The notes under the pieces were generated by a model. It had not been told where the DNA came from and did no database searches. It saw only the letters and a list, made by a program, of their open reading frames with translations. From the NCBI GenBank assembly GCA_965240325.2, contig OZ251222.1, forward strand, positions 558,001-622,000: DNA of 64,000 nt. Direction: 5' to 3'. Below are positions 31,972-35,599 of the stretch, piece by piece. The stretch comes from Rebecca billardiae RCC1528 (taxonomy: Eukaryota; Protista; Haptophyta). Both the position numbers and the translations under genes were made by a program. Each line of letters begins with the position of its first letter. The first letter of the stretch is position 1.

Positions 31972-32172
31972 TCTTACTCTGGCGCAGAAAATTTTCGTCG
32001 AAAACTAACGCACTTTTGGTCCGCCGCTGGCTCGGCCCCCAAGTCCTAAGTTTTTTCCGCGGATGGCGGGTCGGCGGCTGAGGGTCGGCGGCGGCCGCCC
32101 GGGATGCCGACATCGTCGCGCGAGCTCGGCCCAAGTCTTAAGTGCGGATCGAAATATGTTTTGGGGATGGTC

Positions 32173-32372
32173 GGCCTCTCTAAAGTTGAGACCCCCGAAG
32201 CTTCGCCCGTATGGTCGCCTTTTTTTTACTGGTGGGGGCGCTGGTCTGTCCTGGTGGTAAAACCCTGGCGGAGTGCTCGAAGTGGCCTCTAAAGTTGAGA
32301 CCCGAAGCTTCACCAGTAAAATCATGGTCGCCTCGCGAGTTTTTACTGGCGGGGCGCTGGTCTGTCCTGGTG
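32173..32372. repeat. Imperfect ~85-bp direct repeat pair upstream of pPolB
   Basis: GGCCTCT(C)TAAAGTTGAGACCC..GAAGCTTC..ATGGTCGCCT..TTTTACTGG.GGGGCGCTGGTCTGTCCTGGTG at 32173-32256 and 32284-32372. Confidence 0.8.
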
Positions 32373-32467
32373 AAAAGCGAGATCCGGAAAGCTTCGGCCT
32401 TGGATCACTGGTAGTTCTTGGCCGGCTCGCAAGCTTCGGCGGCCGCCCTCGGTTTGTCTTGGCGGGA

Positions 32468-32712
32468 TCGTAGCGCGCAGTGTATCGAAGTGGCGTCTAA
32501 ATTTTCGCTTGTGAAAGCATGGTTTTCAGCGCGAAAATCACCGGCATTTGCCAGTCTCGTTTCGGGCGGCAAACACCGGTGATTTCGGAGGGGCGGGCGG
32601 GATGGAGGGTGTGCGCGGATGCGCGAAAATGGCCTGCGAGTGCCGGCCATTTTGTGACGGCGCGGCGGCCGGGGGTAAACTGTCCTGGTGAGTAGGTAAT
32701 ACCTTCTCTCTC
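32468..32712 (-). repeat. Right terminal inverted repeat of PLV (245 bp)
   Basis: Reverse complement of 18993-19237. Confidence 0.95.
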
Positions 32713-32840
32713 GTGAGGGTGGTGGTTGGTTGGGGGCTGGCCAGGGTAGGGCTGGAGGCTTCGGCCGCCAGCCTGATCACCCGGAGCCCGTTATAAAGGG
32801 GAATTTTAAAATAAAAAAATGGGACTTCACGCTGTACTGG

Positions 32841-35599
32841 ATGCTCCAGCGGCACGGCCGCTCTCCGCGCGGCGCCGGCGGCCCCTTCGCCGCCCTCGTC
32901 CTCCTCCTCGCGACGCGCCCCGCCTGCGCGCACCTCGTCGTCGAGACCGGTCCGCCACACCTGCGCGGCGCCGAGCTGCTCGCCGCGCCGTTCGCGTTCA
33001 CGCCCGCCACGTTTGACGTGCACGCACGGGTGGTGCTCACGCTCTCGGACGAGTGGAACGACGGGGCGTGCCCGCCCGTGTACGTCGGCCCTGAGTCGCT
33101 CGATGGCGCCATCGTCCTACGGCACAGACCGTCGATCTCCCACTGTTCGTACGAGTCGAACGCGCGCGGCGCGGGCGCTGCTGGCGCGGTCGGCTGGCTC
33201 ATCTACAGCGCGGCGGCGGAAACGAGCCTCGACCCGTTGCCGGGGTGGCGCTACTACCACTTTTGGCCCGGCGACTCGCGCAGTCTGCCCCACCCGCCCG
33301 CCGCCGACGTCACGCACCGCGGCGCGAGGCCGCTCGTCGATGCGCTCCTCGCTGGGCAGGAGGTGCGCGCTCGCTTCACGCGCTCGGAGACGGTGTGGAT
33401 GACGGTGCGCCTCTCGCCCGCGTGGGTCGCGCGCGACGTGCTGCTCGTCTTGCAGTCGCTCGTGCTCATCGAGCTCATCGCCAACCGGCTGTACGCGTTC
33501 TGGCGCGCGGACGGCCGGCTGTCGCCGGGCATCGCGCAGGCCGTGCTGCTGCTCGAGCTTGGCGCTCAGCTGGTGGCGCTCGTGCATCGGCTTGTGCAAT
33601 CGAGGAGGCTGCCGGTCCCGGTGTGGCAGCTCCTCATCTTCGCTTACCTCTCGATCAGCGTCGTCGCGGGCACGCTCTTCCTGCTCTACTGGGCGCAGGC
33701 CGCCTGGCCCTCCGCCGAAGTCGACGGCGTGCGCTTCGCGTCTCCCACGCTCGCGCACAGCCCGCGCGCGCGCCGCCGGCTGCTGGCGTTTGTGGTAGCC
33801 ATCGCGCTGTTCGACGTGGGCCTGGTCGCGTGCTTCTTCTTCCCGGCGCCGGATAGCTTTGTGGACCTGCAGCTCCTCACCGCTGCCGTGCTGCTGCCGC
33901 TCTTCGTCCTCGTGCTCTCGCTGCACACGCACTGGCGCGCGCGCACGGTGCTGCCGTCTCTGCCGCCTGGCGTCGCGCGCAGCCTGACGCGCTCGATGGC
34001 GTGCGCCAACGCAGCGTCTGCGGTCGCGCTGCTCGCGAGCGCGTGCATAGCCCCCGCGACGGGGCACCCATGGTTGTACATGGTTGCGACCTTCGTCCTT
34101 CCAAGCGCGCTCAGCGTGAGCTCCGCCGTGCACGCCACCACGTTTGCGCCCCTCGGCGTGCAGCTGGTGCCAGGGCCGCTCGAGCGCTGCGCGCGCGCTC
34201 TGCTCGCGGCCGCCGCTCGCCTGTGCTCGTTCGCGTGGCGCGCGGTGCGGTGGCTTGGGCGCTGCGACGCGAACGCAGCCATTTCGGCAGCGGCTCGCCT
34301 CTCCGCCTCCGGCGCGCCCTCCGCCGACCCCGCGCACGCCTCGGCCTCGGCCCACGGTGCGCTGCCCCGTTGGCTCTGCGTGACTCGGCCACACAAGGTG
34401 GTGCCGGCGGCCAGTGCTGCGGCCGTCCAGCAGCCGGAGGCGCCTGGGCTTGAGGAAGAGCGGCCGCACCTGCTCCTGGGCGTGCAGCTGGGCTACCTGC
34501 GCGAGCTGCGGGCCGAACTCCATGTCCCGCCCGGCGTCGCCTCCTACCAGGTCGGCATTCTCGCCAAGCGGCTCAGCATGTCGGCGCCCGCTCGGCACGT
34601 GCTCGGGTTCAACGGCCCATTCGGCCCGTGCTCAGTGGCGGAGCTGGTGAGGGATCGGCGCACGGCGGACGGCCGCCCGGCGGTGGCGCGCGCCAACCTG
34701 TTCGTCAGCCACGCGCAGGTCTGCCCTTTCGACGACATGCTCTCCGCCGTCGAGCTGTACGCACGCATCCACGACCTGAAGCCCACCGACACCTACCTCT
34801 GTGCGCGCTGCAGCGCGGGGGCGAGATTGCATCTCGCGCACCGCCGGCGCGCGGGCGAGATCGCTTCTCGCGCGCCGGCTGGCTCGCGCGTGGCGCGGCG
34901 TGGCCTCGCGCCACCCGGCCTGCTGCTGCTCTTGCCCAGCGTGTGCACGGGGCGCGCGCGGCGGGTCCGTCCTCACTCGGTGTGAAGACTCACAGACAGC
35001 GCGCCCCGCGTGTGCCGCGCGCCGCGCGCTCACGGCGCAGGGATCGATGTGCTGTGCATGCGGCAGGGCATGTCCCGGCAGGAGGTCCGGCACATCGGCG
35101 ACATTGTGCGCGCCACCGGTCGAATCGTGCTCGTGCTGCAGCCGTGGGCGGCGCCCGTGTGCCTCACGCGTTCGTGGTGTCTCTGTACGCGGCGCGCGCC
35201 CGTGCGCGCGGCCACTGCGGCGCATGGCGCGAACATGCGAACGCGAGTGCGCGCCTTGACAGCCCGACCACACACGCGCACTGCCCGCCGCCCGCCACCG
35301 CAGTCGAGGTGCTCATGGCTGCCTTGGGGGACCTGACCATGGGCATTGCGCTGCCCACGGCCGAGCTCCGCGCGGCCGCGGCGGCGCTCGCGACCGACCG
35401 CGCCAGCTTCGACTCTGCGCTCACCGGGTTCGATGTGCGCTCCTCCGTGTCCTCCGTGGAGGAGGACAGGCGGATCATCTTTGAGATGCTCGAGGACCTC
35501 TTCGGCGATGCGGAGGCGGGCGCCGACGAGTTCAACGCTAAGACGCACGCTGCGTTGCGCAAGGCGCTGGCCGGCTTCTCATGGTCAGCTGCCGTGTGA
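32841..35599 (+). CDS. Signal peptide-PA domain-7TM-HET/TIR-like receptor protein; exons 32841-34800, 35041-35184, 35304-35599
   Basis: PA-like LDGAIVL..C.YESNARGAGAAGAVGWLIY; seven hydrophobic helices; spliced C-terminus ANLFVSHAQ...YLWIDVLCMRQ...VLVLQPWAAPVCLTRSWCLFEV. Confidence 0.7.

Follow-up and report, generated by a model that had tools for sequence, protein, structure and literature searches.

A candidate algal receptor family joining a PA-like ectodomain and a GPCR-fold core to a TIR/HET-like domain

In a 64,000-nucleotide stretch of the genome of the haptophyte Rebecca billardiae RCC1528 (GenBank assembly GCA_965240325.2, contig OZ251222.1, positions 558,001 to 622,000 of the forward strand; hereafter the window, whose own numbering we use throughout), a three-exon gene at 32841-35599 on the plus strand encodes a protein of three modules: a PA-like ectodomain, a seven-transmembrane (7TM) core with the predicted fold of a G-protein-coupled receptor (GPCR) and a C-terminal domain resembling TIR and HET domains. 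The gene and its three-module architecture are real, and we are highly confident that the modules form one protein. Overall, we favour a single-chain PA-7TM receptor with a cytosolic TIR/HET-like enzyme domain that acts in non-self sensing, a reading that we judge evenly poised between right and wrong. An earlier examination of the window’s letters and open frames (the sequence-only reading) had proposed a GPCR-like sensor wired directly to a TIR/HET enzyme; the architecture and folds of that proposal hold up, whereas its enzymatic activity and immune role are things that we can only infer.

By reading and translation, the gene runs from ATG to TGA through 799 codons plus the stop, with exon lengths totalling 2,400 bases:

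32841-34800, plus strand: exon 1, whose last base, T, opens a Trp codon
34801-35040, plus strand: intron 1, GT..AG (GTGCGC...GCAG)
35041-35184, plus strand: exon 2, encoding W-IDVLCMRQ (strand B), strand C (IVLVLQPW) and TRSWCL; its last base, T, opens a Phe codon
35185-35303, plus strand: intron 2, GT..AG (GTACGC...GCAG)
35304-35599, plus strand: exon 3, which completes the Phe codon and encodes the conserved Glu (GAG 35306-35308), strand D and the remaining helices
35597-35599, plus strand: stop codon TGA, by reading

Exon 1 holds 653 full codons plus one base, and each intron splits a codon, T/GG (Trp) at junction 1 and T/TC (Phe) at junction 2, giving YL-W-IDVLCMRQ and TRSWCL-F-E across the two junctions. 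The FVSHA motif lies in exon 1 at 34701-34715. This is the two-intron gene placed by the sequence-only reading: its coordinates and its motifs FVSHA, YLWIDVLCMRQ and LTRSWCLFE were confirmed by reading, and its splicing by homology.

That homology comes from intronless paralogues. In L023, L024, L025, L026 and others, the whole C-terminal domain lies in a single unbroken frame, and the two codons split in the window gene coincide with two columns of this domain, one an invariant Trp and the other a conserved aromatic position, which supports the splice model. When the window pieces were aligned with the intronless paralogues in MAFFT, exon 1 extended to column 94 and exon 2 began at column 96, the missing column 95 being the invariant Trp. 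The last column of exon 2 was 142 (WCL). Reading then puts the split Phe in column 143, the conserved aromatic one, and the conserved Glu, with which exon 3 opens, in column 144. From its eighth residue, the exon 3 row matched columns 152-240 of the domain. Its first seven residues (EVLMAAL) were wrongly placed by MAFFT; by reading they come directly behind the split Phe. The closest paralogues by nucleotide similarity, L027 (88%), L028 (87%) and L029 (78%), preserve the GT and AG of both introns, and among close paralogues there are 0 gap columns in exon 2 and 158-191 in intron 1. Nucleotide homology to L027/L028 begins at 32841/32840, the ATG, and stops shortly past the stop codon.

Retention of intron 1 would bring in an in-frame stop at 34983-34985 and give a 714-residue product. 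Were exon 1 to end there, the downstream pieces would be separate or dead and there would be no fusion, and the unspliced frame does yield such a product. However, this product would be cut off within the C-terminal domain, behind its first strand and helix, when intronless paralogues hold the full domain in one frame. The hole at junction 1 is exactly one column wide and falls on the invariant Trp, the split Phe and conserved Glu follow next after WCL by reading, and the splice sites are conserved. We regard this alternative as very improbable and, on homology to intronless paralogues and conserved splice sites, take the splice model to be correct.

No transcript-derived protein came out of the database searches. 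The unspliced 714-residue product had no record on look-up, and a word-index protein search with residues 540-653 did not recover the gene’s own product, matching only one distant protein. The same search with all of exon 1 gave no matches, probably because Ala-rich words swamped the query. A Logan contig bearing paralogue L024 is without poly(A) and may be RNA or DNA. An antisense open frame of 493 codons (33117-34598, minus strand) overlies the receptor gene, and there are several more of 150-236 codons; these are by-products of ~70% G+C and not genes. Because such a composition yields long antisense frames, an open frame by itself says little in this genome.

Up to the first intron, the protein divides into the following parts:

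32841-32930, plus strand: signal-peptide-like N-terminus (residues 1-30), by eye a basic start, the hydrophobic FAALVLLLA and then ACA before HLVV
32931-33410, plus strand: PA-like ectodomain (residues 31-190), a beta/alpha fold at 32-189 in AlphaFold2
33417-34142, plus strand: seven-helix membrane core with a GPCR fold (residues 193-434), by AlphaFold2 and VIA-align
34176-34307, plus strand: long cytosolic helix past helix 7 (residues 446-489), predicted by AlphaFold2, with a conserved GPLER motif at its start
34308-34478, plus strand: low-complexity disordered linker (residues 490-546), with a predicted local distance difference test score (pLDDT) of <50 from residue 494 and a length that varies among paralogues
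34479-34800, plus strand: first part of the C-terminal domain (columns 1-94), comprising a helical extension, strand A with FVSHA, and helix A

AlphaFold2 modelled the 546 N-terminal residues (32841-34478), using an alignment of 23 paralogues, at a pLDDT of 81.5 and a predicted template modelling score (pTM) of 0.77. The model places a low-confidence helix at residues 14-24, and paralogues share the same N-terminal layout. The signal peptide that had been proposed from sequence has, judged by eye, a fitting layout that its relatives share. Because this signal peptide is followed by seven spans, the C-terminal domain should be cytosolic.

In Foldseek, the modelled ectodomain matched PA domains with probability 1.00 and E values of 1.8e-4 to 5e-3, including the bacterial aminopeptidase 2ek8 (E 1.8e-4), ZNRF3/RNF43 and plant VSR1. 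The Pfam PA model (PF02225) scored 20.5 bits (E 5e-4), under its 23.9-bit cut-off; the PA-like ectodomain named in the sequence-only reading is supported by its predicted fold. Residues conserved in the paralogue alignment of this region are Cys77, Cys102, Ser103, Gly135 and Asp145.

Behind the ectodomain, AlphaFold2 predicts seven helices, again as had been proposed, at residues 193-224, 231-256, 259-288, 308-333, 338-373, 376-406 and 410-434. VIA-align superposed this bundle on GPCRs at Z 17-21, with a root-mean-square deviation of 3.4-4.0 Å over 230-255 residues; values were Z 19-21 when the Foldseek matches were re-examined and Z 17-20 when 48,161 chains were scanned independently of Foldseek. 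The 50 highest rows of that scan were all GPCR-fold proteins of classes A, C and F (Frizzled/SMO), LYCHOS or designed GPCR-like folds, and Z 17-21 is well over the VIA-align caution line for helical bundles. The core is therefore predicted to have a GPCR fold without being a recognisable GPCR family member, and G-protein coupling is not implied. Membership of class A was considered and rejected: the window protein has no DRY, NPxxY or CWxP motif, and the window pieces matched no 7tm Pfam family. Among the helix regions of other family members, the only class A motif was one NPxxY match in paralogue L046.

The C-terminal domain very probably has a TIR-superfamily fold. Its secondary structure was taken from a model of the intronless paralogue L024, which served as a stand-in at 51% identity to the window copy over the exon 2 core; the alignment of 74 rows included the window exon pieces, and AlphaFold2 returned a pLDDT of 96.2 and a pTM of 0.92. 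A three-helix extension is followed by strand, helix, strand, helices, strand, helix, strand and further helices, an order that fits TIR strands A to D and sets the conserved Glu in the helix behind strand C. Foldseek placed almost only TIR domains in the top rows (RPV1, RUN1, SNC1, RPP1, SPARTA and AbTir, at E 0.05-0.3), with no match under E 1e-3. In VIA-align, the model aligned with SARM1 at Z 7.1-7.5 (3.1-3.2 Å over 114 residues) and RPP1 at Z 7.4 (135 residues), with further neighbours in MyD88, RUN1, AbTir, SpbK, ThsB, SEFIR and nucleoside deoxyribosyltransferases. Nothing outside the TIR superfamily, ThsB, SEFIR and deoxyribosyltransferases appeared in the top 25-50 VIA-align rows of the wide search and the second look. 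Since the Z values are only moderate, we base the fold call on this uniform ranking and not on any single score. A C-terminal domain that lacked a TIR- or flavodoxin-like fold had been named beforehand as evidence against the fusion; every top structural neighbour proved to belong to the TIR superfamily.

At the motif level, the domain reads FVSHA ... W-x-D ... RQ ... PW ... R-x-W-C-x-x-E and resembles HET, with three HET-type blocks in order, near-invariant in the family, that take in the W-x-D region and R-x-W-x-x-x-E. We counted conservation over 212 domain instances (representatives at 50% identity), among residues present, and found eleven positions to be strongly conserved: S64 (184/192), H65 (173/192), W95 (185/191), D97 (186/192), Q103 (172/191), P129 (185/194), R138 (190/194), W140 (192/194), C141 (185/195), E144 (191/195) and D198 (173/183). 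The window copy retains all eleven; the position after the conserved Gln, commonly His in the family, is Gly in the window copy and its closest paralogues. Such a number of fixed polar residues argues for an active site over a docking surface. In SARM1, plant TIRs and AbTir, the catalytic Glu lies in the helix behind the third strand. By element order and the WxxxE motif, not by superposition, E144 would be the equivalent of that residue (SARM1 E642). The Glu of WCxxE, which the sequence-only reading had equated with that of TIR NAD-cleaving enzymes, is thus near-invariant and in the helix behind strand C, although its residue-level placement is something we infer. Taken together, the models and motifs make this domain TIR/HET-like by fold and motif but not a proven member of either Pfam family; the identity first assigned to it stands on those two grounds and not on any significant sequence-level match to HET or TIR.

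The window gene is one of many. Exon 2 paralogues occupy 46 places at E<1e-3 in the alga’s own 72-Mb genome, and a PA-7TM profile finds 77 pieces, or ~60 separate modules. This paralogue survey (~60 paralogues) and structure prediction both back the PA-7TM-TIR/HET-like design that had been proposed for the window gene. The same architecture is found in Diacronema lutheri KAG8471001.1 and KAG8471002.1, which carry the automatic UniRef name ‘Heterokaryon incompatibility domain-containing protein’, in line with the HET-type blocks, and in several environmental or SRA-derived records. The D. lutheri homologues are ~50% identical in the domain, an identity low enough that we take D. lutheri to be a different species from the source alga. 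Beyond the receptors, HMMER with the domain profile over 1.84 billion representatives returned 9,936 clusters at E<=1e-3, 5,783 at 1e-10 and 1,970 at 1e-30. The top matches mostly had the domain followed by TPR_10/TPR_12 repeats, and in the ESM Atlas the domain falls among unnamed eukaryotic clusters from green algae, diatoms and haptophytes.

Some relatives depart from the window gene in layout. In P0006 and its cluster (environmental; ENA/JGI/Logan), the same domain is N-terminal and a multi-helix membrane region follows, which reverses the module order. One PA-7TM module (G000:C24:1480767-1482143) has an in-frame TGA, and the N-terminal and C-terminal halves of L047 (G000:C33) lie in different frames; both could be pseudogenes, or the family may hold extra introns. 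L022 (G000:C18:1865650-1868709, minus strand, frame 385-2004) has a WIDRACIDQ … LWCVFE block (Pfam HET 14.9 bits, sub-threshold) with a C-type lectin domain (E 2.6e-6), and L021 (C8) has a block similar to that of L022 (HET 18.2 bits). These two make up another subfamily of this genome, one that is closer to HET. The highest Pfam HET scores among other genes of the whole genome were 17.6 bits in six-frame translation and 18.2 bits (E 0.0033) when the frame was scanned alone. There are also ~10 canonical TIR_2 (PF13676) domains over the cut-off (L051-L060), at C13:293189, C5:1949398 and 1949878, C13:1545244 and 1545865, C34:1015527, C10:3069773 and other sites; two of these genes each carry two TIR_2 domains in one long frame. 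The genome’s canonical TIR_2 domains showed no profile similarity to the domain of the PA-7TM family.

To gauge selection on the window copy, we computed the ratio of nonsynonymous to synonymous substitution rates (dN/dS) against L027, L028 and L029 by region, with small counts throughout. The ratio was 0.11-0.27 in exon 2 (the core), about 0.5 in the ectodomain, 0.7-1.0 in the 7TM core, about 1.0 in the linker and 0.56-1.37 in the exon-1 part of the C-terminal domain. On these values, the core exon appears to be under purifying selection. A catalytic core under constraint amid faster-changing regions would give such a pattern, and so would relaxed constraint on a young copy. Indeed, the window copy could be a recently duplicated member that is decaying or silenced, whatever the family as a whole does. 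Against the closest paralogues, its dN/dS is ~0.85-1.0 for the 7TM core, 1.0 for the linker and 1.2-1.4 for the stretch of the domain that exon 1 encodes, substitutions are even over codon positions, paralogue homology ends exactly at the ATG, an out-of-frame ATG (32819) and, from ~130 bp away, an integrated virus-like element lie upstream, and the open frame is weak evidence at ~70% G+C, where a 493-codon antisense frame exists. Yet the frame, both splice-site pairs and every near-invariant family residue are intact, dN/dS is 0.24-0.27 in exon 2 and ~0.5 in the ectodomain, and diversifying selection, too, would make parts of a recognition gene change fast. We therefore rate decay of this copy as distinctly improbable.

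A working receptor of this kind would act as follows. Its parts, in order, would be a signal peptide, an extracellular or lumenal PA-like binding domain, the GPCR-fold core, the long cytosolic helix, the disordered linker and a cytosolic domain of ~240 residues that would be a HET-like form of the TIR superfamily. A ligand or partner at the PA/7TM module would change the receptor’s state or clustering; the cytosolic TIR-like domains would be brought together and become active, as in SARM1, plant TIR receptors and bacterial TIR systems. Their likeliest activity would use the conserved Glu to cleave NAD+ or some related nucleotide and lead to a signal or to cell death, in a likely context of non-self recognition such as that of viruses. 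Our best guess is non-self or virus sensing, given that the family has ~60 genes and diverges rapidly and given what TIR and HET do in other systems. That the C-terminal domain is an enzyme using the conserved Glu is a real possibility on this analysis, though we lean against it a little, and an immune or cell-death role is possible but somewhat more doubtful still.

The C-terminal domain could instead be a non-catalytic assembly or adaptor module that oligomerises homotypically, like the TIRs of TLR, MyD88 and MAL, for example with soluble or TPR-fused members. MyD88, MAL, TRIF, TRAM and IL-1R-family TIRs score nearly as well as enzymes in structural alignment (Z 5-6.8), the many soluble or TPR-fused copies of the domain in this genome and in other eukaryotes are possible partners, and an adaptor role for HET was proposed by Dyrka et al. 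(PMC4986451). We consider this improbable: the polar set (S, H, D, Q, R, E and D) is near-invariant over 212 divergent copies, which is more active-site-like, and the best single matches are the catalytic TIRs SARM1 and RPP1. The domain might also be an enzyme of the TIR, nucleoside 2-deoxyribosyltransferase or SLOG type with another substrate or chemistry, in a general environmental or developmental receptor that has no part in immunity or cell death. In keeping with that view, nucleoside 2-deoxyribosyltransferases score Z 5.2-6.2, level with many TIRs; the additional S-H, D, Q-H and D that the family conserves are not hallmarks of TIR; ~10,000 clusters over green algae, diatoms and haptophytes suggest a broad cellular role; and the ectodomain is conserved. 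However, the top-ranked and most other rows are TIR proper, the R-x-W-x-x-x-E and W-x-D blocks are the HET/TIR pattern (PMC4986451), and a large, diverging paralogue family is typical of non-self recognition genes. This alternative seems to us rather less credible than the adaptor.

Several results nevertheless weigh against a TIR/HET-like enzyme acting in non-self sensing. No Pfam TIR (PF01582, TIR_2 PF13676 and relatives) or HET match at E<=10 was found on the three exon pieces, four full-length paralogues or 22 family members; the best Pfam HET (PF06985) score on a relative was 13.7 bits (environmental P0021) against a cut-off of 22.5. The family profile found no TIR among PDB sequences, and comparing the family by hhalign with nine canonical TIR_2 domains from this genome gave a probability of 0.3%. 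Structural agreement at Z 7-7.5 is moderate and covers only ~115-135 of roughly 180 core residues, and the conserved Glu is matched to SARM1 E642 by element order and motif. The extra conserved S, H, D, Q, R and D are atypical of catalytic TIRs and may point to a different chemistry, and HET domains themselves are without any established enzymatic activity (PMC10197012). Finally, conservation is higher in the ectodomain than in the 7TM core, unlike what would be expected of a domain tracking variable ligands, and the window copy has dN/dS near 1 in the 7TM core and linker against its closest paralogues.

The fullest form of the receptor-enzyme idea, which we offer as unlikely in its entirety, is that signalling needs no G protein: a receptor of GPCR fold would directly control the TIR-superfamily enzyme built into it. 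The ~60 receptors would be a haptophyte repertoire for viruses or other non-self, and the effector would come from a huge unnamed eukaryotic family (~10,000 clusters) that has an S-H / W-x-D / R-x-W-x-x-x-E active site of its own and links fungal HET with canonical TIR.

The DNA around and within the gene has features of its own. The virus-like integrated element recognised in the sequence-only reading ends at ~32712, and the gene starts ~130 bp beyond. We rejected the possibility that the gene is part of this element, given a G+C content of 67-70% versus 55-60% and ~60 paralogues dispersed over the genome. Repeated units of ~110 nucleotides, seen by eye at 32140-32520 between the element and the gene (…CTCTAAAGTTGAGACCC…GAAGCTTC…TTTTTACTGG…GCTGGTCTGTCCTGGTG…), may be the element’s terminal repeats. 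An 18-nucleotide A/T run, TTTTAAAATAAAAAAATG (in the 32804-32841 region), is unique in the window and ends in the out-of-frame ATG at 32819, which opens a 65-codon frame 22 nucleotides ahead of the receptor ATG. Because paralogue homology begins only at the receptor ATG, this leader is specific to the window copy. Within intron 1, two tandem 34-nucleotide units (34813-34877) each contain a short hairpin, GGCGAGAT-NGCN-TCTCGCGC. The hairpin 20-mer has 21 genome copies versus 0 for a reversed control. Close paralogues on C24 and C29 have it in intron 1, it also occurs next to another paralogue, on C15, and at unrelated sites, and it may be a small dispersed hairpin element.

To our knowledge, almost nothing is known of the immune receptors of the marine algae whose blooms viruses end. 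Bacteria, plants and animals all use TIR domains in immunity, and HET is a poorly understood fungal relative of TIR. If our reading is right, a GPCR-type sensor and a TIR/HET-type effector joined in one chain would connect two heavily used signalling modules in a new way, and ~60 copies per genome would make a candidate recognition repertoire. The effector domain family is huge and has no Pfam model, so that establishing its activity would annotate thousands of proteins and bear on whether HET-type domains are enzymes.

Searches of the literature on 7TM-TIR proteins in protists, HET in Diacronema and GPCR-TIR fusions in algae found no paper on a PA domain, GPCR-fold core and TIR/HET-like tail in one design. 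The sequence-only reading’s suggestion that the architecture is undescribed in algae accordingly survives for the full design but needs narrowing for its parts, given the public D. lutheri proteins named HET and two published precedents. HET, a cell-death effector remotely related to TIR, was reported with relatives in Haptophyceae in 2014 (PMC4986451) and reviewed in 2023 (PMC10197012), and in 2025 TIR proteins of Gephyrocapsa huxleyi were described that are induced by virus, have a conserved Glu and bear extracellular regions or multiple membrane helices (PMC12489294). The window family shares a haptophyte origin with these membrane TIRs; they were found through Pfam TIR families by HHsuite, and a PA domain or GPCR fold is not reported for them (PMC12489294).

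Compared with known systems, the domain has the same three blocks, in the same order, as fungal HET (PF06985), the cell-death effector in heterokaryon incompatibility: a hydrophobic strand leading to S-H/Y, W-I/L-D-x-x-C/S-x-x-Q and R-x-W-x-x-x-E. It differs in falling below the Pfam cut-off, in being non-fungal and in its fusion to PA-7TM or TPR, whereas HET is fused to NACHT-WD/TPR; the spacing of blocks 2 to 3 is presumably shorter than in HET. Catalytic TIRs (SARM1; RPP1, RUN1 and RPS4; AbTir, ThsB and SPARTA) are its only structural neighbours (Z up to 7.5), with the same strand/helix order and a Trp-x-x-x-Glu in the helix behind strand C that would match the catalytic Glu in position. 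Unlike them, the window family has an extra three-helix N-terminal extension, extra C-terminal helices and extra conserved S, H, D, Q and R, and it bears no significant sequence or profile similarity to them. Toll-like and IL-1 receptors follow the same logic, with a binding domain outside, a span through the membrane and a TIR inside that works once clustered, but they are single-pass with leucine-rich-repeat or immunoglobulin ectodomains, in contrast to a PA-like domain on a seven-helix core. The ectodomain fold is shared with ZNRF3/RNF43 and VSR1 (Foldseek E 5e-4 to 5e-3, TM-score to target 0.5-0.64), which are single-pass proteins with RING or epidermal-growth-factor-like (EGF) modules, whereas the window’s Pfam PA score is below the cut-off. 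TPR_10/TPR_12-fused members share the C-terminal domain at E 1e-50 to 1e-150 but are soluble, with the domain N-terminal to repeats of the kinesin-light-chain/NPHP3 type. The closest counterparts in overall layout are D. lutheri KAG8471001.1 and KAG8471002.1, which have the same PA-7TM-domain architecture in another species at ~50% domain identity.

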